64,000 nt of DNA, taken from Macrostomum hystrix (lineage: Eukaryota > Animalia > Platyhelminthes). The stretch's first letter is position 1; every line of letters begins with the position of its first letter. A model generated the notes under the pieces. That model worked only from the letters and a program-made list of their open reading frames with translations, did no database searches and was not told where the DNA came from. The position numbers and the translations under genes were made by a program. Positions 18,242 to 53,081 of this stretch are shown here, piece after piece. The stretch lies in NCBI GenBank assembly GCA_950097015.1, contig CATNEN010000007.1, forward strand, positions 1,302,001-1,366,000, given 5' to 3'.

Positions 18242-18943
18242 GTGCGGTGGCGTCCCAGTGCGCAGGGCTCTCCGGTCGATATTTCTCTCCAGCCAGCCTG
18301 GGATAGAAGAAAGAGAGAGGCTGGCGTTGACTGGCTGTCAGAGAGGGCAATTCTGTGTCCTAGAAATGATGCCGCCAACGAAATTAACTACCAACTGCTT
18401 CAGGAGTTGCCAGGTGCAGTTTTCACCTACAAGTCAATTGATACAACGTTGACTGATGACACCGCTGTGGAGTATCCTGTTGAGTTTCTGAACTCTCTAG
18501 ATCCTCCTGGAACTCCATCGCACAACTTGCAGCTGAAAGTTGGGGCACCAATTATGCTCCTCCGCAACCTGAATGCGCCAAGGCTGTGTAACGGCACCAG
18601 ACTGATAGTCAGGCGGCTCTTCCCACACGTGATTGAGGCCACGATAATGACTGGATCTGGCAGAGGAGAGTCTGTGTTCGTTCCCCGGATTCCAATTATC
18701 CCCACGGACCTGCCATTTCAGTTCAAGCGACTGCAGTTCCCTGTGAGAGTGTGCTTTGCGATGACTATTAACAAGGCTCAGGGACAGTTGCTGAAGGTGG
18801 CTGGCATCAACCTGGAGACTCCTTGCTTCTCGCATGGGCAGCTTTATGTCGCCTGCTCCCGTGTTGGAACTCCAGCTGGCCTATTCATTTTCGCACCAAG
18901 GGGAAGAACGAAGAATGTGGTGTATCCCCAGGCCTTGAGGTGA
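18242..18943 (+). pseudogene. C-terminal half of a Helitron Pif1-family (RepHel) helicase
   Basis: WLSERAILCPRN, EFLNSLDPPGTPSHNLQLKVGAPIMLLRNLNAPRLCNGTRL, FKRLQFPVRVCFAMTINKAQGQ, FSHGQLYVACSRV. The Rep domain and Walker A are absent. Confidence 0.92.
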
Positions 18944-19787: not shown

Positions 19788-21034
19788 CTGTGAGCTCTGT
19801 CGCTGACACTAATTCAGACCGATCGAATCTACAACTCATGGTCTCCGGCGCCGTTGTTCCGTGCGATGATGACAATCCTGCCTCAAAGATTAGCTTTGGT
19901 AAAGCGGCCAAGGACAAAGTAGCGGTGAGTGGCAAAGTAAAAAGGCTTAAACACTCAAAGGGAGTTCCTAAAGTGCTGAGATCCACAGAATATGAACACG
20001 ACTCAGATTGCTCAACTAGCCGTATTGAATCAAGCGATGATATTAGGCATGATATTTCTAGCTCGATAGAGAAGTACAATACGACAGAGGAGAACAAGAC
20101 AACAAAGGAGGACAAGACAACAGAGGAGGACAAGATGATAGAGGACAGGACGACAGAGAAGGACAAGACAACAGAGGAGGACAAGATGATAGAGGACAGG
20201 ATGACAGAGGAGGACAAGATGATAGAGGACAGGACGACAGAGGAGGACAAGACAACAGAGGAGGACAAGATGATAGAGGACAGGACGACAGAGGAGGACA
20301 AAACAACAGTGGAGGACAAGATGATAGAGGACAGGACGACAGAGGAGGACAAGATGATAGAGGACAGGACGACAGATGAGGACAAGACAACAGAGGAGGA
20401 CAAGACGACAGAGGAGGACAGCACAACAGAGGAGGACAACACAACAGAGGAGGACAACACAACAGAGGAGGACAAGATGATAGAGGACAGGACGACAGAT
20501 GAGGACAAGACAACAGAGGAGGACAAGACAACAGAGGAGGACAAGACGACAGAGGAGGACAAGACGACAGAGGAGGACAAGACGACAGAGGAGGACAAGA
20601 CGACAGAGGAGGACAAGCTAGATACGGACATTAAGAAAGAAGTAGCTCATGAGGCGCACAAGAAAGCAGAGGCAGACAAGGAGTCTGAGGAGAACGAGAA
20701 CGCTGAGGCGGACAAAAAGGCGGCTGCCAAAAAGAAGAGCAGTACAGATGCTGTCTCGAAGGAAACTCCTGCAGATGCGGCTGCCAAGGCCGCTAGACCC
20801 ACGATGGCACCGGTTATTAAACCCGGAGAGAAAGCAAAAAAATATGACATGACCAAAAGTGCTGCAGCCAACACCAAAGAAGAAGAGGCCAGATTGAAAA
20901 AGGTCAAGCTAGGAGAGATGGGAAAGAAAAAACGAGCAAAGAAGGAGAATAAGAAAGAAATGGAAACATACAAAGGCAAGAAAAAGGCAAAGGAAGAGGC
21001 ACAGAAAGGGAAAATGAGGCGAAAAAGCTGGTAG
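19788..21034 (+). CDS. Long low-complexity ORF/exon with TEEDKT/MIEDR repeats and a Lys-rich C-terminus; unknown protein
   Basis: About 414 open codons, a candidate acceptor TATAG ending at 19787, coding-like non-repeat flanks and AATAAA at 21173. No homology recognised and no upstream exon found. Confidence 0.5.
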
Positions 21035-21468
21035 ACCTGAAGAAGAAGTAAAAACTGAAAGTTGACGATAAGAGAGGCCGAGTACCTTCGACTAATGGTT
21101 TCTGTTCTGCCCTCGGTTTCTCATTTTTGTTTTATTCGTTCTAATTTCATTGACGCCCAAATGATCAGAGAAAATAAATATGTGCCTTAGTCAATCCATA
21201 TAAAGAATTTTAAATTCGAAGCAATTTAATTTCATACGAAATATAAATTCTTCCCTACTTATTGAAATAGTAAAAATGCCTGAAGTATATTGGATAGGAA
21301 AGTTTATAGACCTGCACTTGATCGTAAAGTTGTGTATTTTGCTAAACAGCATCAAGCACAGAATCATATGTCAGAGTCAGTAAGGGCAGTACCGATAGGT
21401 CGCATGGTGGCGGTGAGGCATTCTGTTCAGAGGCATTCTGAATCTTAATACGAGCTCAAGATTCTAGT

Positions 21469-22392
21469 TTACTCATCTTCTTCATCTTCCTCCTCTCCCT
21501 GTCCTCTGTGGCCTGTTGGGCTTGGTCTTGGTCGGTTATGATCTCCATTGTGATCATCATCGTCGTCGTCATCATCATCATCGTCATCGTCGTCGTCATT
21601 CTCCTCATCATCGTCGTCGTCATTCTCTTCATCATCGTCGTCGTCATCGTCGTCGTCATTCTCCTCATCATTGTCGTCGTCATCGTCTTCGTCATTCTCC
21701 TCATCATCGTCGTCGTCATCGTCGTCGTCATTCTCCTCATCATCGTCGTCGTCATCGTCGTCGTCATTCTCCTCATCATCGTCGTCGTCATCGTCGTCGT
21801 CATTCTCCTCATCATCGTCGTCGTCATCGTCGTCGTCATTCTCCTCATCATCGTCGTCGTCATCGTCGTCGTCATTCTCCTCATCATCGTCGTCGTCATC
21901 GTCATCATCATCATCATTCTCCTCATCATCGTCGTCATCATTCTCCTCATCATCATCGGTCTCTCTTTGTCTTCTGTGACCTGCAGTTGGGTTTGGTCTT
22001 GATCCATCATGATCTTCCTCATCTTCCTCCTCGTCTTCTTCCTCATCATCTTCCTCCTCGTCCTCTTCGTCCTCTTCGTCGTCACTGTCTCTTCGCTTTG
22101 GCTTGGGTCCTTTGTGCGTGTCGTCGTTGTCATCATCATCGCCTCCATCGTGATCGTCACCGGTTGGTTCCAAGTTGTCATTGTCCATCTGGTCACGCTT
22201 AGACATCAGCTCAGAGCCAGAGCCGTGTCGCTGCGGCATCTGTCGGTGGAAGCGGCAGGGTGCAGAACAGTTGGTCATTAAAACGAAGATAAGAAGAACT
22301 GAAAATAAAAAAGCTAGTCAAGCAGTGTCAAGGATACTCACCGCAGCGATCGCAGCCACACCAACAAGCAGCAACAGCAGGATCAGCCTCAT
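21469..22392 (-). CDS. Secreted Asp/Glu-rich protein, 2 exons, ~273 aa
   Basis: Exon 1 (22392-22342) is the signal peptide MRLILLLLLVGVAAIAA with donor GTGAGT. A 102-nt intron is followed by exon 2 (22239-21469) in phase 0: MPQRHGSGSELMSKRDQMD...KRRDSDDEE...(EENDDDDDDDD)n...RPRPSPTGHRGQGEEEDEEDE*. Confidence 0.82.
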
Positions 22393-22487: not shown

Positions 22488-22495
22488 ATTTATAG
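22488..22495 (-). promoter_or_regulatory. Candidate TATA box of the Asp-rich secreted gene
   Basis: CTATAAAT on the minus strand ~96 nt upstream of the ATG. Confidence 0.5.
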
Positions 22496-23604: not shown

Positions 23605-24197
23605 ATGTGCAGCGGAAACTTACCTCGGCGGTCTGGTGCTCAATGGCGCAGAGGACTCGCATGAGCGGCCTACCGTTCGATCCGGGCCGTCCTCCAGTCC
23701 ACAGCGCTGCCTGACCGCCAGAGGGCTCGGCTGTGGCAGGCGGTGGTCGAGACCGTCCTGCTGTACAACGCCGAGTCGTGGACGCTGACGGCTACGCTGG
23801 AGCGGCAGCTGGACTCGGCGCACTCGGGGCTGCTCCGTGCGGCCTTTCAAGCTGACGAGAGCGTCGGGACCAAGGCTCTGTACGAGAGAGCCCAGCTGCA
23901 ACGCCCGTCCACCATCCTGCGCCAGCGGCGACTTCGACTAGCGGGCCACGTTATTCGGGCCGAGAGCTACTGCCGCCGGCCCGCCCAGGACGACCTGCTG
24001 CTTACCCTGCAGGGCCCGTTCAGGCGCGGCCAGGCTCGAACCCGCCGCTACGTCGACTGCTTGCTGAGCGACGCCGGGGCGCCCGACACTGCCACCGGCG
24101 CGGACCATGTTCGCGCACTGGCTCTGCGGCGCGCCATCTGACGCTGCCTCCCTGACTTTTGGGGCTAGCTTATTTTGTTGTTGTTGTTGTTGTTGTT
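23605..24197 (+). mobile_element. 5'-truncated RTE-like LINE, 3' end with (TTG)n tail
   Basis: YLGGLV, QAVVETVLLYNAESWTLT, LRQRRLRLAGHVIR, GPFRRGQ, stop at 24141, then (TTG)8 at 24175-24197. Confidence 0.85.
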
Positions 24198-26866: not shown

Positions 26867-27485
26867 TACTCAGCAACAGCTAAACCCCCCCAACTCACGC
26901 TGTCACACGGGCACAAAAGTTAAGCAATGTCTTTAATTCTAGTCTCAGTATCGTGTGTAGGAACCACGAGCATGCAAAAGTGCCGTGACTCGTCGTGGCA
27001 TCCTGATCACCAGCCGGTTGATGAACTCTTGGGGCAGCTGCTGCCAGGCATTCAGCACCGCCAGTCGCAACTGTTCAGCATTCTGTGGGGCATCCTGCTG
27101 ATCTCTTCGCTTTACAAAGTCCCAGACATGCTCGATGGGGTTCATGTCTGGAGACTTTGACGGCCAGTTCAATGTGCGAATGCCGAGCTGCTCCTTCAGC
27201 AGCTGCACGTGTGCTGCTCGATGTGGCGCAGCGTTGTCGTCTTGAAGCATGCAGTTCTGCGGGCCGCCAAAGGTTGTCGTAGCAAATGGCAGAAACTGCT
27301 GCTGTAGCAGCTCTGCATAGGTCTGCCCAGTTACATTCTGCTCCAGAATGACAAGCTCCTGTTTTGCCATTCAGTGCGATGCCAGCCCAGGCGTGCAGTG
27401 AAACACATTTCTGAGTCACCGATGGCATACAAAACTTTTGGGCCGTGTGACAGCGTGAGTTGGGGGTTTAAGCTGTTGCTGAGTC
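26867..27485 (-). mobile_element. Tc1-family deletion derivative (619 bp) with ~55-60-bp TIRs
   Basis: TA|TACTCAGCAACAGCTAAACCCCCCAACTCACGCTGTCACACGG at the left end, with its inverse ending GAGTC|TA at 27485. ORF 26945-27370 has LQDDNAAPHRA and WPSKSPDMNPIEHVW (DD34E-type). Confidence 0.92.
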
Positions 27486-31141: not shown

Positions 31142-31148
31142 TATAAAT
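31142..31148 (+). promoter_or_regulatory. Candidate TATA box of the secreted repeat-protein gene
   Basis: CTATAAATA ~76 nt upstream of ATG 31224. Confidence 0.55.
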
Positions 31149-31223
31149 ATAGCTAAAACGTAAAGGAGAAATGCAGAATCAACTTTTCCTAAAGATTAAG
31201 ATCTGTAAAAGCAACAGGACAGC

Positions 31224-33513
31224 ATGAAGCTGATACTGCTTCTACTAGTGACGGTTGCGGTGGCTGCAGCGGTAAGCACTCTCAGTCGTTTTAACAATTT
31301 AGAATCTGAATTCCACAGGTAGCTGACTAAGAACATTCAATACCGGCAAAAAAATTTAGATACCGCGAGGCTTAAACAGGCCTCCTCCACCAACACCCGA
31401 GGAGGATGATAGTGAGAGAGATGCCGGCCGCCGACCACCACCGTCCCCGACACCTGAAGAGGACGACGATGATGAGGATGATAGTGAGAGAGATGCCGGC
31501 CGCCGACCACCACCGTCCCCGACACCTGAAGAGGACGACGATGATGAGGATGATAGTGAGAGAGATGCCGGCCGCCGACCACGACCATCCCCGACACCTG
31601 AAGAGGACGACGATGATGAGGATGATAGTGAGAGAGATGCCGGCCGCCGACCACGACCATCCCCGACACCTGAGGATGATGAGGATGAGGACAAGAGAGG
31701 TGCCCGCCGCCGACCACGACCATCCCCGACACCTGAGGATGGTGAGGATGAGGACAAGAGAGGTGCCCGCCGCCGACCACGACCATCCCCGACACCTGAG
31801 GATGATGAGGATGAGGACAAGAGAGGTGCCCGCCGCCGACCACGACCATCCCCGACACCTGAGGATGGTGAGGATGAGGACAAGAGAGGTGCCCGCCGCC
31901 GACCACGACCATCCCCGACACCTGAGGAGGACGAGGACGATGAGGATGAGGACAAGAGAGATGCCCGCCGCCTACCACGACCATCCCCGACACCTGAGGA
32001 TGGTGAGGAGGATGAGGATGAGGACGAGAGAGATGCCCGCCGCCGACCACGACCATCCCCGACACCTGAGGATGATGAGGATGATAGTGAGAGAGATGCC
32101 GGCCGCCGACCACCACCGTCCCCGACACCTGAAGAGGACGACGATGATGAGGATGATAGTGAGAGAGATGCCGGCCGCCGACCACCACCGTCCCCGACAC
32201 CTGAAGAGGACGACGATGATGAGGATGATAGTGAGAGAGATGCCGGCCGCCGACCACGACCATCCCCGACACCTGAGGATGATGAGGATGAGGACAAGAG
32301 AAGTGCCCGCCGCCGACCACGACCATCCCCGACACCTGAGGATGGTGAGGATGAGGACAAGAGAGGTGCCCGCCGCCGACCACGACCATCCCCGACACCT
32401 GAGGAGGACGAGGACGATGAGGATGAGGACAAGAGAGATGCCCGCCGCCTACCACGACCATCCCCGACACCTGAGGATGGTGAGGAGGATGAGGATGAGG
32501 ACGAGAGAGATGCCCGCCGCCGACCACGACCATCCCCGACACCTGAGGATGATGAGGATGATAGTGAGAGAGATGCCGGCCGCCGACCACCACCGTCCCC
32601 GACACCTGAAGAGGACGACGATGATGAGGATGATAGTGAGAGAGATGCCGGCCGCCGACCACCACCGTCCCCGACACCTGAAGAGGACGACGATGATGAG
32701 GATGATAGTGAGAGAGATGCCGGCCGCCGACCACGACCATCCCCGACACCTGAGGATGATGAGGATGAGGACAAGAGAGGTGCCCGCCGCCGACCACGAC
32801 CATCCCCGACACCTGAGGATGATGAGGATGACGACAAGAGAGGTGCCCGCCGCCGACCACGACCATCCCCGACACCTGAGGATGGTGAGGATGAGGACAA
32901 GAGAGGTGCCCGCCGCCGACCACGACCATCCCCGACACCTGAGGATGATGAGGATGAGGACAAGAGAGGTGCCCGCCGCCGACCACGACCATCCCCGACA
33001 CCTGAGGAGGACGAGGACGATGAGGATGAGGACAAGAGAGATGCCCGCCGCCTACCACGACCATCCCCGACACCTGAGGATGGTGAGGAGGATGAGGATG
33101 AGGACGAGAGAGATGCCCGCCGCCGACCACGACCATCCCCGACACCTGAGGATGGTGAGGAGGATGAGGATGAGGACAAGAGAGGTGCCCGCCGCCGACC
33201 ACGACCATCCCCGACACCTGAGGATGATGAGGATGAGGACAAGAGAGGTGCCCGCCGCCGACCACGACCATCCCCGACACCTGAGGATGATGAGGATGAG
33301 GACAAGAGAGGTGCCCGCCGCCGACCACGACCATCCCCGACACCTGAGGAGGACGAGGACGATGAGGATGAGGACAAGAGAGATGCCCGCCGCCTACCAC
33401 GACCATCCCCGACACCTGAGGATGGTGAGGAGGATGAGGATGAGGACAAGAGAGATGCCCGCCGCCGACCACGACCATCCCCGACACCTGAGGATGGTGA
33501 GGAGGATGACTGA
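31224..33513 (+). CDS. Secreted basic/Pro/acidic tandem-repeat protein, 2 exons, ~733 aa
   Basis: Exon 1 (31224-31271) is MKLILLLLVTVAVAAA with donor GTAAGC. An 88-nt intron ends TTTAG. Exon 2 (31360-33513) is open in frame +1: IPRGLNRPPPPTPEEDD, then about 32 units such as KRGARRRPRPSPTPEDDEDED and SERDAGRRPPPSPTPEEDDDDEDD, TGA at 33511. AATAAA at 33569. This frame is missing from the ORF track because exon 2 has no ATG. Confidence 0.85.
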
Positions 33514-33894
33514 GCGTGGCTTGTGCGTTTAGAATGCCTATCCAGTGTTTTTTTAAAACGGTTCAATGAATAAATAAACTCTTAGCTCAGCAATAATGGC
33601 ATAATAAAAGTTTCGGCTTTTTTCGAGACTATTTGCTGCTACAGAAACGGGTTAAGAAAAAAAATGAGAAAATATTTTTATCGATGCTATACTGCTAGCA
33701 TCTGGGAAACGGACAATATCTCGCCGCTAAAAAGGTGGAATTGTTACTCGTAACAAACAATACAATCCGATAATAACACATCCTCTAATTCCTCAAAGAG
33801 TTAGGAATTGAAGCTTTTCATTTGATAATACACAATCCTTACACACCCGTTACCGATGACGATAGGAAAATATATTCAATTGTGCAATTCTAGG

Positions 33895-40719: not shown

Positions 40720-41990
40720 TATCTTGCTTTTAAATAAAATATGCTGGCATTTTTTATAATTGTGATAATTAGGTGAGATGAAATAAATTCAATGTTTTTT
40801 TGCTACTTAAAATGTATTTTGCTCTTTAATTAGCTTTTGTTATCTTTCTTTTTTAATCTAAATTTTCTCTAATGTTTTGAATTGGCTTATCAGTGTTCAC
40901 TTTAGGGAAATTTTTGGGAGTTGGCATACAATGAGTAATTTCTTAGTATTTCTTACAGTTAAAATAGCTGTGGTTGCAAGATTTAACCTTGTTTTGTAAC
41001 CTTAAAGAATTTTTGCAAGCTCAATTTATGTAATAAATATTTGTGTCCTTTGTGACAAAAACCTTGGTTTCACATTTTGTTTTCTTGTCATTAAATATCT
41101 AGTTCACTGTATACTAGAAATCTGTTTATATAAACACCTTAACAAAACCTAAAGATTGGCAGCAAAAGAACATGAAATTTTTTTTTCCTATTGCTTCACA
41201 AACTCACATCAGAAATTTAATTTTTTATCAAGAAATATCAAGTATGTATTTTGTAACACTTGATGTTTTATCATTCTAGCAAAAATTATGCTTTGAAATT
41301 TTTATTAGTATTTTATATATACTTGTAAGAATTATAGATTAATTTCAAATTCATTTTTGTAGAATGCTCTAGTATTACCAGATTATAATTTTGTATATTT
41401 TTGTGGGTTGCCAAGTTGGCTGCTCTAAAGAGTTTTAGTTTATTTAAATTTGCAAAAAGATGTGAGGGCTCTGTGCCCCAGACAAAGAGCCTTATAATGG
41501 TCAGGGCAACTTCCCCATGTCCCCAACCCCAGTGAGGATTGCAAACCAATACAACTGTGCAAGCAGGGGTGATGCATCCGCCTAGACAATGGTGATGTCT
41601 GGGGCCAGCTGTCTGGAGTAGAGTGCACCCTCTGCCACAATATGAAAAATATATAATTATATATGTTTCACATATATCTAAGTGAAAATTAAAAAGGTTG
41701 ATACAAGTGGTATTGTATTTTTAATGCATGTACTATAAGAGGTGGGTTAAAAAACTTGATGTATAGTCAACATGTATGCTTATCCATATATAGTTTTTTC
41801 TTTGACAAGTGTGTTATGGGACCAAATTTAGTGCCAGTAAAAACTTATTGTCTTTTCAAAAATTTGCCCTTATACCATATTCTTCAACTTCAGCTATACA
41901 GATAATTCAATAGAAATTCTTAGTAATACAAAAGTGCATAATTGACATCGAATTGCAACTTATTTAGCTACTGCATCAACAGTGTTAGAC

Positions 41991-43308
41991 ATGTCTGGCG
42001 ATGTGCATACTTACAATGTGGTTTTTGTGCTTGGCAAGCCCGGTTGTGGCAAGGGCACCCAGAGTGAGCGCATTGTAATGGAGTTTGGCTACGATCACAT
42101 GTCTGCTGGAGACCTGCTCAGGTGCGAAGTTGAATCAGGCTCTGAGCACGGCGAAATGATCAAGCAGAAGATGCGAGATGGTCAGATTGTTCCTGTGGAA
42201 GTCACCTGCAGCTTGTTGGAGAAACGGATGGACAAGCTCTATGCCGAGAAAAAGCAGGTATTCTAGGAAACAGAATGACTTGTTAGCCCTCTAATGTCTT
42301 ATAATATGGGATAAATCTACTTTCAACTTTTTCACTTAAACTTTTTGTTTACCTGTGTCTTATTCTTAATCCTATAGATAATTAGATATAAAGTGAGCCC
42401 GGTGTACTTTTATCATCAGCTCCTGCTATTGTCAGGCGCCTCGAAAGACTGTTCTGCTGTTCTGTCCATGGACTGGGAGATCCGGCGCCTCGAGCCAAAT
42501 TTCTACTAGCTGCTAATGCTGCTATCCGATTCCTAAGTCAATTGCTCAAGGACAACTCGTTTCTATTGGATTAAGACTCGAACTCCTAACCAACTCGTTC
42601 AGAAGTCCAAAGCATCTCTCTAAATATCCAAAGTCCTTTGGATTTGCAAGCAATTGGGTAAAAATGGCACCTAAGCTAGTTAGAGTGGATGAACTGCCAT
42701 TGGAAAATCCGCTTCCAAGAGTAGCGTACAGCTGCTCGCTCAGATCAAAGTGTCTATAAATACCTTGATGCCCTAATAGCCTTTAAATTAGACAGATTTT
42801 AGGTGAGTATTAAACATTTCCCCATATTTTCTAATCCTAGAAAGTTTCAAATCGTTTACACCCTCAAATGATAGTTAAAGCAGCAGAATTATCTAATCTA
42901 TTTGGAGTTCTATCGGTTCCAATGTTTTTCGGTACTCGTTTGTATCAGTGTTACGCAATGCGAAAAACAACATGACAAACGCAGGTGAACTTCCTTGTGG
43001 ACGGCTTCCCTCGCAACAAGGACAATCTGGACGGCTGGAATCGCCAGATGGGCACTAGAGCTGTGGTTCGCGGAGTTCTGCTCATCGACGCCTCGGATGA
43101 CGTCTGCGCCGGTCGTTGCCTGGGCCGGGGCAGCGGTCGCCTTGACGACAATGAAGCTACGCTGCGCAAACGCTTTCAGTCGTTTGTTCGCGACACAATG
43201 CCAATTGTGGAACACTACGAGAAGTCAGGCCTGGTGTTCAAGGTCAATGGCGAGCTAGAGCCTGACCGCGTGTTTGAGGAAGTGCGAGTCGCGTTCTCAA
43301 AGTTTTAA
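41991..43308 (+). CDS. CMPK1: UMP-CMP kinase, 2 exons, 196 aa
   Basis: Exons 41991-42257 and 42985-43308, phase 0. [15 protein letters not shown] (P-loop), [34 protein letters not shown]. Confidence 0.95.
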
Positions 43309-48042: not shown

Positions 48043-48140
48043 ATCTGATTCTGTCATGTCCGTCCTTCTTTATCTATCAGTGCTTCAATTTATTAGCAAA
48101 ATACTGCGTATTCCAGTGCTGAGCTAACATAGTGGACACT

Positions 48141-50371
48141 ATGGCAACAGAGCCCGCAAAGCAAAGGCCGCAGATGAGCTATCGCTATCTGGGCAAGTCC
48201 GGTCTAAAAGTCTCAGCTCTGTGCATGGGCGCAATGACATTCGGCTCCAGTTCTCGTCCGGGTAACACGGACGAAGCCGGGTCGCACGGCATGCTCGATC
48301 AGTTTGTAAGCTCTGGTGGCAATTTCATAGACACCGCCGATGTGTACGCTGCCGGCCAATCGGAGCGCATCATTGGCACCTGGCTTGCTGCCCGCCGCTG
48401 CCGCCAGTCTGTGGTCTTGGCCACCAAGTTCTACGGTAGGGTGGACGACTCCAGCCAGGATCCGAACTGTCGTGGCGCGTCTAGGCGTCACGTTGTGGCT
48501 GCTTTGGAGGCGAGTCTCGATAGATTGGCCACTGACAGGGTGAGAAATCTCTTGATTTATTACTCCATCAACACCCACCTCAATCAAAAAACATCCGTTG
48601 ACACCCGCCTCAGTTAGACTGGCAGAAAGCAAGGAGACTATTCTGCCCATTCCACTGGGCACCCATCCAACGCCTACCCCACGTTGACACCCACCTCACT
48701 CCCAATCCCTTGTTGACACCCACCTCACTCACTACCCCTCCGTTGACACCCAACTCACTCCCAATCCCTTGTTGACACCCACCTCACTCACTACCCCTCC
48801 GTTGACAACCAATTCACTCCGATCGCTCGTTGGCACCCACGTCGCTCTCTACTCCTCTGTTGTCACCCACCTAACTCTTTAGCCCTCCGTTGACACCCAT
48901 TTCTCCCTTGACCCACCCTTTGGCACCCACCTCACTCTCTACCCCTCCGTCTACACCCACCTCACTCCTACCCCTCTCTGACACCCACCTCACACTCTGC
49001 CGCCCCTTAAGGCCACTCGCCTAACTCTTGATCTCTGCTCCGTCAGTAGCAGCCACTTTAATGGCTAGTGTTCCATTCTTGCTTTTTAATCTTTAATTTA
49101 CTCAGTAGCTGCAATCAATAAATTCCACTGCCAGGTGGATCTGCTGCAGCAGCATTGCTTTGACCCGGCCACGCCGCTGGAGGAGACTCTGCGCACCGCT
49201 CACGATCTAATCCGGTCCGGCAAAGTTCATTACTTCGGCGTCAGCAACTTCACCGGCTGGCAGCTGCAGAAGGCCGTCTGCGTCAGCGACAAGCTGGGCT
49301 TGGAGCCGGTGCTGGGCCTGCAGCAGCAGTACAGCCTGCTATCGCGGCAGGCGGAGCTCGAACTCCTGCCCGTCTGCGCCAATGAGGGCGTCGGCCTATT
49401 GGCCTGGAGTCCGCTGAAGGGCGGCCTCCTCACTGGTTGGTTTCTTATAACTTTCCTATGAGCCTACATTCTCTGCCTACCATTGTTGTCTAACCTTCTT
49501 CAACACCCAGCTCACTCAAAAAACAACCGTTGACACCCACCTCTGTTAGACGCGTCTCCCTGCTCACCAGTCTCCTTGTTTAACCTACTCTCCCTGCCCA
49601 CCTGTCTCCTTGTTTAACCTACTCTCCCTGCCCACCTGTCTCCTTGTTTAACCTACTCTCCCTGCCCACCAGTCTCCTTGTTTAACCTACTCTCCCTGCC
49701 CACCAGTCTCCTTGTTTGACCTACTCTCCCTGCCCACCAGTCTCCTTGTTTAACCTACTCTCCCTGCCCACCAGTCTCCTTGTTTAACCTACTCTCCCTG
49801 CCCACCAGTCTCCTTGTTTAACCTACTCTCCCTGCCCACCAGTCTCCTTGTTTAACCTACTCTCCCTGCCCACCAGTCTCCTTGTTTAACGTTCCCTTCT
49901 TCCTCGCGTCAGTCTCAGCCATCACTTCCACTTGCAGGCAAATTCCCTCGTCCTGATGCCGCCACGACAGTCGCGGCTCCCGATCCGACCACCCGAGTCG
50001 GCTGGGGCGCCACCGTCGGCTTGGCCAACGAGTCCCACCCGAGCTGGAACCGGTTCGCTGCTGACCCGGCCTACTGGCGCGTCATCGACGCCGTGAACTC
50101 CGTGGCGACAAGTCGCGGCGTGTCTCCTAGCCAAGTGGCTCTGCGCTGGCTGCTGCACCAGCCCACCGTGGCGTCGGTGATTATCGGCGCTAAGACGCCG
50201 GCCCAGCTAGCCGAGAATTTAGCCAGCGAGTCGTGGCGACTCACACCGGAGGAGGTGCAGTCGCTGACAGCGGCTTCTGCCGTTGAACTGGCTTATCCGT
50301 ACGAAATGCAGGCCAGGAATAGCGCGGCAGGCGACCGGCTGAGGTTCAGGAATCCGGACTGCATTTGGTAG
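48141..50371 (+). CDS. Aldo-keto reductase, YajO/IolS/Tas-like subfamily, 3 exons, ~377 aa
   Basis: Exons 48141-48539, 49135-49435 and 49938-50371, phase-consistent [37 protein letters not shown] (catalytic D, Y), LATK (K), DLLQQH (H), [44 protein letters not shown]. Confidence 0.95.
48590..49010. repeat. Degenerate tandem repeat in AKR intron 1
   Basis: Recurrent GTTGACACCCACCTCACTC. Confidence 0.8.
49560..49890. repeat. 34-bp minisatellite in AKR intron 2
   Basis: Unit TCTCCTTGTTTAACCTACTCTCCCTGCCCACCAG, about 9 copies. Confidence 0.95.
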
Positions 50372-51200: not shown

Positions 51201-53081
51201 ATGGCTGAGCTGGACATTGGGCTGCACTGTTGCCAGCCAGGCTGCGGCCAGCTGGACTTCCTGCCGATCTGCTGCCAGGGTTGTCGCCGAGTCTACTGCA
51301 GGCGCCACGCCTCGCTGTCGGTGCACGCCTGCTCGCTGGAGTTCACCAACTGTCTGGCGACAGCGGAGCCGGAGCCCTGCCCAGCCGAAGCTGCATCTGA
51401 GAGCAGGCTTCAGCGAGAGGCCAGTTGCATCGGCTGCTCTCGGCTGATAGCCGCGCCAATTCAGTGCGCCATCTGCGGCGGCTTCGTCTGCGTGGCGCAT
51501 CGTTTCAGCGATTCGCATCCCTGCCTGGGGAATTCGGATTCGGACAGTCGGGCGGCGGAGCAGCCGGTTAAGAGGGCTGAGCTGAGCAATGAGCTGCTGG
51601 AGCAGCTGCGGCGGGCCGACAGTCGCAATTTAGCCGGCTCGGCTGGTGAAGAAAAAAATGTCGGCGGGCAGCACCGTCGACCCGGTCGCAACGAGCGGCA
51701 GCTGGCGTTGATGAAGCTAAAGCTGTCAGCTGTTGGCGACAAGTCTGTGCCGCAGGCTGATAGGGTCTATCTAATGGTGCGCTGGAATGAAGTGCTTGGT
51801 CCTTAAACACTCAAATATATAGGGTTAGAAAATAAGCTGGTTGAATTGAAAGCATTTAAATTTTCGTTTGAGGAAAATCGGTGTGGGTTTGGCATTGTGG
51901 CAGAGCGTTCTAATGCATTTGCCTATCGCACCAAGGTCAGTGAGCTCGACTGCGTTTGCTTTGCAGCCGCATTGTGGAGGCTTGGGATCTTGTCTTGCAA
52001 TTTACGCCCTCCTTGTCAAGCCAACCTCTAAGCCATCGTGAGAGTGTGCACTGCCTGACAATGAGAGTTTATTGATTGTGTTAGTGTGTGCCTTCGTACA
52101 GTATCTGTGAGCGGAATGCCCGCTGACTGTTGGTCTACTCACCAAAAGATATTACAAATTTTATTAGGGAGTTAGCCAATGGAGTCTCAAGAAAATTAGG
52201 TTGCAGTTTAGTGAGAACAATGAGGGGTTGGTATTAATAGTTTACATTGGGGATAAAACGATGAGGTTTGGTCTTTTATGGTGTACATTGAGGGATAGGA
52301 AGATTAGGGTTTGGTCTTGCAGAGTGTACATTGGGAATAGAACGATAAGGTTTGGTCTTTTATGGTGTACATTGAGGGATAGGAAGATTAGAGTTTGGTT
52401 TTGCAGAGTGTACATTGGGGATAGAACGATAAGGTTTGGTCTTTTATGGTGTACATTGAGGGATAGGAAGATTAGGGTTTTATCTTGCAGAGTACATTGG
52501 GGATAGGAAGATGAGGGTTTTGTCTTGAAGTGTACATTGAGGTTCAGAAAAATAAAGTTTGCGAGTGTTTAGACTACTCTAATAAGGTCCGGAAGTAATA
52601 TGGTAAAATCTTGGAAAACGTACACAGAGAAGTTATGCAATTGATTGTTTTCTAAATCAAGTCGAGTTATTGTCGAAAGTGAAAGGGGGTTCCGTGTAAA
52701 ATATTTTCGGCTATTTGTATTTTACTGACTTCCAACCTTCCTACTTACTTCCACCTTCAGGTCCAACCTGACTGCCAGCAACAGCAGCAGCCGCAGCAGC
52801 CGCTAGCGGTCTTCTTTTCCCGTCACTGGCCAGTGGGCAAGGCAACGGACAGCCTGGCAGCTCGTCTAGGAGTTCCTCCAGTGCGCCGGCAGCCAAAGGA
52901 TGAGCGCCTCTCACTGCTGCTGCCCAGCGATTCAGACGATGATGGTCCTCCGGCGGAAGTTGCGACTCAGCGGCGGCCACGGCGCCTGCTGCTTCCGGGA
53001 GACACCATAGCGACTTGCCTGAAGAGGGGCGACTTCTCTGACGGCGATCGCCTGTTGTTGACCTACTGTGCCGCCCCCTGA
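51201..53081 (+). CDS. ZFAND1: AN1-type zinc finger protein 1-like (two AN1 fingers plus C-terminal ubiquitin-like domain), 2 exons, ~298 aa
   Basis: Exons 51201-51776 and 52761-53081, phase 0. MAELDIGLHC..PGCGQLDFLPICCQGCRRVYCRRH...HAC, second finger C..C...CVAHRFSDSHPC, ALMKLKLSAVGDKSVPQADRVYL, VFFSRHWPVGKATDSLA. Confidence 0.88.
52230..52545. repeat. 84-bp (two ~42-bp subunits) tandem repeat in the ZFAND1 intron
   Basis: GTACATTGGG..AGAACGATAAGGTTTGGTCTTTTATGGTGTACATTGAGGGATAGGAAGATTAG repeated 3-4 times. Confidence 0.85.

Follow-up and report, generated by a model that had tools for sequence, protein, structure and literature searches.

A candidate gene for a secreted repeat protein of alternating charge, with polyanionic relatives, in the flatworm Macrostomum hystrix

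A 64,000-nt stretch of the genome of the flatworm Macrostomum hystrix (contig CATNEN010000007.1, forward-strand positions 1,302,001 to 1,366,000; hereafter the window, in which plain coordinates are counted) carries a long tandem repeat within positions 31,224 to 33,513. The assembly has been published (Wiberg et al. 2023, PMC10468722). The locus, here called gene A, raises the question of whether the repeat belongs to a gene and, if so, what kind of product the gene would make. Our analysis suggests that gene A is, with a high degree of likelihood, a real two-exon gene for a secreted repeat protein. The reading that we prefer as a whole goes further, and we give it a probability of about one half: the product would be a largely intact, self-neutralising polyanionic gland secretion. 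Most likely it belongs to a small family of secreted polyanionic proteins that is restricted to this lineage and found only in M. hystrix, and in which gene A has undergone the greatest expansion.

The predicted gene is compact. A TATA box (TATAAATA; 31142..31149, + strand) was read directly from the sequence 82 nt 5' of the ATG. The coding part of exon 1 (31224..31271, +) translates into a signal peptide of 16 residues, MKLILLLLVTVAVAAA, with MK as its n-region, a hydrophobic core of 11 residues and AAA at -3 to -1; judged by eye, it follows the n/h/c-region and -3/-1 rules. GTAAGC stands directly 3' of this exon and opens a predicted phase-0 intron of 88 nt (31272..31359, +; GTAAGC...TTTAG), in which the remaining AG acceptors lead, on manual reading, to stops or to the wrong frame. 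Exon 2 (31360..33513, +) comprises 717 codons and a TGA at 33511-33513. Its translated mature part starts with IPRGLNRPPPPTPEEDD and continues with 31 units of basic-PSPTP-acidic type, and neither a stop nor a frameshift occurs across its 2.1 kb. The exon 2 frame has no ATG, GTG or TTG start, and it was therefore omitted by the program that lists open reading frames (ORFs). Downstream, a 9-mer in the 3' untranslated region (3'UTR), AGAATGCCT (33531..33539, +), lies 18 nt past the stop and is common to a second gene described below, and two overlapping AATAAA polyadenylation signals (33569..33578, +) lie about 56 nt past the stop. An upstream ORF of 18 codons (31171-31227, +) begins at the ATG at 31171, about 22-30 nt past the TATA box, and its TGA overlaps the ATG of gene A (gcATGa); it may sit at or before the transcription start.

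The repeat itself is a tandem array of 63- and 72-bp units (31414..33509, +), delimited by TRF (Tandem Repeats Finder), by anchor spacings and by a list of the units. Thirty-one copies of the anchor CCCCGACACCTGA were counted; 14 of the intervals between them measure 63 bp, and all of the other 16 measure 72 bp. Translated, the array amounts to 32 units, each 21 or 24 residues long (31 full units and a degenerate first one, RPPPPTPEEDD), and RPRPSPT is the invariant core of most of them. Four main unit classes were distinguished: SERDAGRRP[PR]P, whose members carry long acidic tracts and a net charge of -8; KR[GS]ARRRPRP, with a net charge of -1; KRDARRLPRP; and ERDARRRPRP, with a net charge of -6. 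One extra unit reads KRDARRRPRP. The class order (S, S, S, K two to four times, L, E) recurs about three times, so that the array appears to have grown by duplication of multi-unit blocks, and in-frame unequal crossing-over of such blocks may have driven the expansion. Across distinct unit types the acidic tracts are runs of GAN triplets (manual count from the unit list), which differ at position 3 in at least eight places, at position 2 in one (GAT/GGT) and at position 1 never. This pattern is the expected trace of selection for Asp/Glu; triplet slippage could contribute to it.

The sequence-only reading of the stretch had proposed much of this gene, and every element that it described is borne out. 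The signal-peptide exon, the 88-nt intron and the 717-codon exon are each present in the sequence, the last in an open frame that lacks a start codon and had been missed by the ORF track, and the gene lies, as it said, between a TATA box and AATAAA signals. Its count of about 32 copies of 21-24 residues agrees with the 32 units found here, all three unit sequences that it quoted occur, and its claim that all unit-length variants are multiples of 3 holds for 30 of 30 spacings. A plus-strand secreted-protein gene appears well supported by its predicted structure and by its paralogues.

These paralogues have the signal-peptide exon in common. A scan of both strands of the window (128 kb) asked for an ATG that opens a stop-free run of 13-25 codons followed by GTRAG; the run had to lack Asp and Glu, to have K/R close to its beginning and to include a hydrophobic core. 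Exactly two sites were found, 31224 (+) and 22392 (-), and each lies 88-102 nt before an acceptor that leads in frame into an acidic reading frame. The second site opens gene B, located 9 kb from gene A on the opposite strand. Gene B comprises a TATA box (TATAAAT; 22488..22494, -), a coding part of exon 1 that translates into MRLILLLLLVGVAAIAA (22342..22392, -), a predicted phase-0 intron of 102 nt (22240..22341, -; GTGAGT...GACAG) and an exon 2 of 256 codons and a TAA (21469..22239, -). The exon 2 product is rich in Asp, Glu and Asn and has a net charge of -157; its basic Pro modules, GPKPKRR, SRPNPT..HRRQR and NRPRPSPT, are each followed by an acidic tract. Two copies of AGAATGCCT were located in its 3'UTR by a motif scan of the window (21416..21439, -).

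Elsewhere in the genome, pattern matching detected a third gene in two copies, C (about 57.7-59.3 kb on its contig) and C', with identical signal-peptide exons on the minus strand at G000:C7:59239-59291 and G000:C8:4519658-4519710 (about 4.52 Mb). Both copies have a TATA box, the signal-peptide exon MRLLLLLLLAIAVASA followed by GTGAGT, and a predicted intron of 197 nt. The product of the C7 copy has 443 residues, 91% of them Asp or Glu, and no basic Pro modules. The 5' flank, the signal exon and the first 436 codons of exon 2 are identical between C and C', as far as the 3-kb loci extend; such a pair points either to duplication in the very recent past or to a haplotig that was left over on a second contig.

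The layout of the transcription unit recurs throughout the group. Genes A, B, C and C' all have a signal-peptide exon of the form M[KR]L[LI]LLLL...A[AS]A that ends in phase 0 at a GTRAG donor, the introns that follow are phase 0 and 88-197 nt long, and the TATA boxes of genes B and C lie 100-110 nt 5' of the ATG (80-110 nt in the family). Across the 220 Mb of the genome, a codon-degenerate pattern for M[KR]LILLLL matched genes A and B and nothing else, and a reversed control gave four matches; the pattern relaxed at position 4 and combined with the GTRAG donor gave five matches, namely A, B, C, C' and one site (MKLFLFLF...) that was set aside as unrelated, its donor being out of phase. A one-mismatch match to the exon 1 pattern on contig C38 was likewise unrelated: it is CTG/CAG-rich and no acidic frame comes after it. 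In the window, scanned on both strands, AGAATGCCT has three copies, all on the sense strand and at most 50 nt past the stops of genes A and B, and gene C has a near-copy, AGAATGAC, at a similar place, with ACAGAATGAC about 60 nt past its stop. A 9-mer of this type may be a common 3'UTR regulatory element of the family.

The proteins are less alike. Their mature N-termini align (A IPRG...SERD, B MPQR...SKRD, C LPQG...SKRE) on a consensus xP[QR][GR]...S[KE]R[DE] followed by Asp/Glu tracts, in which five columns are invariant, a moderate degree of support. RPRPSPT has one copy in gene B (21514-21534). The other six-frame copies of RPRPSPT inspected in the genome, on C31, at C7:10.46 Mb, on C30 and on C9, are in closed frames and were rejected as family members; a degenerate DNA pattern for this motif was dropped as too loose, its matches being at control level. 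When the DNA flanking genes A and B was aligned, similarity was confined to the TATA box, exon 1, the codons for RPRPSPT and the 9-mer on the 3' side, with no longer stretch in common. Paralogy of A, B, C and C' is thus suggested at two levels, well supported by the layout of the predicted transcription units and moderately supported by the predicted proteins. The members differ in their basic part: gene A, with its basic-PSPTP-acidic module 32 times, would encode a polyampholyte, whereas B, which has three basic Pro modules, and C, which has none, would encode nearly pure polyanions.

The exon 2 product of gene A (717 residues: D 158, R 137, P 136, E 123, S 42, G 33, T 32, A 31, K 18) contains no Cys, aromatic residue, His or Met. 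The mature protein would have a mass of about 83 kDa, 61% charged residues, a net charge of -126 and an isoelectric point of 4.3. AlphaFold2, run without an alignment, gave a mean predicted local distance difference test score of 35.8 and no secondary structure, and the protein is predicted to be intrinsically disordered, a single-sequence model being weak evidence for this. The composition is not that of mucin-type repeats rich in Pro, Thr and Ser (Pro 19%, Ser plus Thr 10%, charged residues 61%); only the PSPTP core is mucin-like. In this core Ser has Pro at -1, +1 and +3, Thr has it at -1 and +1, and Pro-flanked Ser/Thr of the PSPTP type are a favoured context for GalNAc-transferases. T-P-E matches S/T-x-E, the motif of kinases of the Fam20C type, and the M. 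hystrix genome holds one Fam20C-like secretory kinase gene and several proprotein-convertase P-domain loci.

These features allow a mechanism to be proposed. According to established rules, signal peptidase would cut the precursor after AAA. In each unit an Asp/Glu block would be paired with a cationic block that is rich in Arg and Pro and ends in PSPTP, and these alternating charge blocks could allow the protein to condense in secretory vesicles, by self-association or together with Ca2+ or cationic cargo. The protein would leave the gland cell largely intact, perhaps trimmed by convertases, which could cleave at some of its 18 KR sites, and perhaps O-glycosylated at PSPTP; outside the cell it may be a hydrated polyanion to which cations or cationic proteins bind. 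Core-1 O-glycans have been reported in Macrostomum gland products, and peanut agglutinin-positive glycans occur in Macrostomum glands (PMC6410801, PMC9229212). Since genes B and C encode little else than acidic polymers, the function of the family probably resides in the acidic tract. No sequence relation was found between gene A and the vertebrate salivary proline-rich proteins or the chromogranin-type granule proteins. Those proteins are secreted and disordered, with Pro-rich or acidic tandem repeats and partial cleavage at basic sites; they receive glycans or phosphate groups along the secretory pathway and act as bulk polyelectrolytes. To our knowledge, a strict alternation of cationic and anionic blocks with a period of 21-24 residues is absent from them.

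Several points weigh against our preferred reading. The exon-intron structure of gene A is predicted from the DNA sequence, and the mechanism is derived from amino acid composition. BLASTP of the mature parts of A against those of B aligned RPRPSPT alone, at a non-significant E value of 0.25, as their low complexity allows no significant match. In the basic block most unit variants alter the amino acid, so that purifying selection on the sequence finds no support there. A HMMER search of 1.84 billion representative proteins, in which the exons were used separately, as in all our protein searches, gave no self-match and no credible relative, only 14 low-complexity matches; with no orthologue in that collection, conservation between species lends the gene no support.

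The other searches gave similar results. Pfam scans of exon 2 of A and of B produced no match, and a word-index protein search gave one compositional match for exon 2 of A and none for residues 1-100 of exon 2 of B. No match to six gene A units was found in the PDB sequences, and the best score in the ESM Atlas, 0.76, was below a useful level. Annotated proteins of M. lignano were within the searched collection; therefore M. lignano either has no recognisable orthologue or has one that is unannotated. The best HMMER match, XP_037040249 of Bradysia coprophila ('nucleolar protein dao-5-like'; E 1.6e-20, 36% identity over low-complexity repeats), resembles the gene A product in its hydrophobic, signal-peptide-like N-terminus and its tandem basic (KRRPKPxH) and acidic blocks. 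However, it is an insect protein with Cys-containing EDCEDCDE blocks and long non-repeat regions, and its E value arises from common composition and periodicity. We read the likeness as apparent convergence, not homology.

Among the alternatives, the one that survives best, unlikely as we consider it, is that the product is a polyprotein: cleavage at KR and trimming by carboxypeptidase would release many zwitterionic peptides of 19-22 residues, for example GARRRPRPSPTPEDDEDED, and these, which contain GARRRPRPSPTP, would act as signal, pheromone-like or seminal peptides. The signal peptide, the acidic context of the 18 KR sites and the several convertase loci of the genome agree with this, and cleavage at KR in silico does yield 13 peptides of 19-22 residues (net charge -2 to -7) in a few near-identical forms. 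However, the same cleavage leaves one peptide of 46 residues and three of 111-112. Basic sites do not flank every copy: KR is present in 18 of the 32 units, and SER or ERD stands at that position in the other 14, so that a clean polyprotein with one peptide per unit is unlikely. Every KR is preceded by Asp (DKR) and none by Gly, so that the signal for amidation is missing. In 27 cases the residue after RR is Pro, a context in which established convertase specificity disfavours cleavage. In addition, B and C, as nearly pure acidic polymers with a single KR, point to the acidic tract as the conserved function. The sequence-only reading had offered both a multi-copy peptide precursor and an uncleaved polyampholyte; the first is weakened by the KR count and the mixed fragments, and the second, as judged from the predicted protein, appears ahead.

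It is improbable that the array is a non-coding minisatellite in which the open frame, the ATG and the splice sites are coincidental. The density of minisatellites in the window is very high (about 24, with units of 16-72 bp, in 64 kb). Fourteen arrays have a period divisible by 3, most of them without coding-like structure, and at least one open frame runs through nine of these 14. The open frame of gene A is therefore weak evidence, not above chance, and its array is open in two plus and two minus frames. Frame openness and whole-array phase composition (Cramer's V), which fails to separate the arrays, were thus discarded as coding tests, because non-coding minisatellites with multiple-of-3 periods score equally; the outcome of the homologue searches also suits a minisatellite. 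In their place we used identity at lag 3 within the repeat unit. The gene A unit has identities of 0.51, 0.50 and 0.41 at lags 3, 6 and 9, against 0.21-0.31 at other lags. Such codon-like structure was seen in three of 15 multiple-of-3 arrays (gene A, gene B and an 18-bp array in the ORF at 19790-21034), and the other 12 are without it. The signal exon with its donor, of which the 128 kb contain only two examples and which joins the repeat exon in frame across the 88-nt intron, likewise argues against a minisatellite, as do the specific paralogues elsewhere with matching layout and the presence of the TATA box, the AATAAA signals and the common 3'UTR motif. The signal-peptide exon, the triplet structure within the unit and the paralogues are more than chance. 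The ORF at 19790-21034 (+), whose 18-bp repeat encodes TTEEDK and MIEDRTTEEDK units before a Lys-rich tail, is probably a real charged repeat protein, and no signal peptide was seen in it.

Equally improbable, in our view, is a calcium-binding or mineral-controlling secreted protein of the Asp-rich shell or bone type, or a vesicular Ca2+ buffer. Long Asp/Glu tracts occur in all family members, poly-Asp tracts bind Ca2+, and the Fam20C-like kinase encoded in the genome would fit such a role. This idea is based on composition, and there is no homology to Aspein, Asprich or SIBLING proteins. We know of no mineralised structure described in Macrostomum.

Only a slim chance attaches to the proposal that gene A, with or without B and C, encodes the negatively charged factor of the releasing glands, which would compete with the anchor-cell surface for the cationic cohesive protein ap1 and so bring about detachment. 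The sequence-only reading had raised this link on condition that the organism was a Macrostomum, and that condition holds, the species being M. hystrix. This species has duo-gland adhesive organs with releasing gland cells, as well as homologues of ap1 and ap2 (PMC8621496). The releasing factor has been proposed to be negatively charged, and its identity is still open in the literature (PMC6410801, PMC9229212, PMC8621496). All three products are predicted secreted polyanions, and PSPTP, if O-glycosylated, would be positive in periodic acid-Schiff (PAS) staining. With similarly small likelihood, A, B and C together might form an anionic product of the releasing gland that is stored in condensed form, unfolds on exocytosis and strips ap1 from the anchor cell; gene A's own cationic blocks would enable the condensed storage, and the stripping of ap1 would switch adhesion off. 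However, Wunderer et al. described releasing vesicles as containing PAS-positive polysaccharide at low protein density and predicted a small molecule (PMC6410801), which lends no support to an 83-kDa protein. Furthermore, no homologue was found among the annotated proteins of M. lignano, the species of the original model, and the cationic blocks partly neutralise the gene A product.

The weakest alternative, and a very doubtful one, is a precursor of Pro/Arg-rich host-defence peptides with acidic neutralisers, whose freed RRRPRPSPTP blocks would be antimicrobial and possibly Thr-O-glycosylated like drosocin. In gene A the next KR comes only after the acidic tract that follows the peptide, and there is no site for cleavage between TP and ED, so that the product of KR cleavage keeps its acidic tail and stays net negative. 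Each KR-type unit does carry PRP/RPRP motifs in an Arg/Pro-rich dodecamer; Pro-Arg-Pro motifs define proline-rich antimicrobial peptides (PrAMPs; PMC11678341) and drosocin is O-glycosylated on Thr (PMC10449632). A precedent for the tandem layout with acidic spacers is the apidaecin genes, in which tandem PrAMP copies are separated by RR and acidic EAEPEAEP spacers (PMC11549390). The apidaecin pre-pro-polyproteins of bees and wasps resemble the gene A product in being secreted, with tandem Arg/Pro-rich copies, acidic spacers and dibasic sites (PMC11549390). Unlike them, gene A has the reversed order of peptide, acidic tract and KR in place of a dibasic site and acidic run N-terminal to the peptide, lacks KR in 14 of 32 units and shows no sequence similarity; the pharmacophore PRPPHPRL is absent from its translation, no match was found in the PDB or protein libraries, and no insect PrAMP was among the matches. 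Unless another protease removes the acidic tail, gene A is unlikely to work in the apidaecin manner.

The self-neutralising polyanionic secretion thus remains the reading that we favour. The gene family is new and lineage-restricted; secreted low-complexity repeat proteins are already broadly known, and the strictly alternating charge design is unusual among them. Annotation easily loses secreted low-complexity repeat genes as "simple repeats", and the gene A protein is absent from a collection of 15 billion proteins although the source assembly is published. By itself, gene A would be a candidate orphan gene of gland type. Provided that the gene is real, the gland repertoire gains a secreted polymer in which cationic and anionic blocks alternate strictly, together with a small polyanion family, in a flatworm genus whose best-developed model, M. 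lignano, serves the study of reversible adhesion, seminal fluid and regeneration. The family supplies three or four concrete candidates for the proposed anionic releasing factor, and the predicted product of gene A, as a natural self-neutralising polyampholyte, may be of interest to work on coacervates and biomaterials.

Further ORFs were noticed in the window. Those around and between genes A and B, judged by eye, resemble fragments of mobile elements: the C-terminus of a Pif1/Helitron-type helicase (18242-18943, +), a reverse-transcriptase fragment (23743-24141, +) and a Tc1/mariner transposase fragment (26945-27370, -). Exons at 41982-43308 (+) resemble UMP-CMP/adenylate kinase, and those at 48132-50371 (+) resemble an aldo-keto reductase (Kv-beta-like). 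An ORF at 51201-51803 (+) encodes an AN1-type zinc finger (ZFAND1-like), with its best match in M. lignano at 58% identity. The kinase, reductase and AN1 loci could serve as synteny anchors when orthologues of A and B are sought in the genomes of other Macrostomum species.

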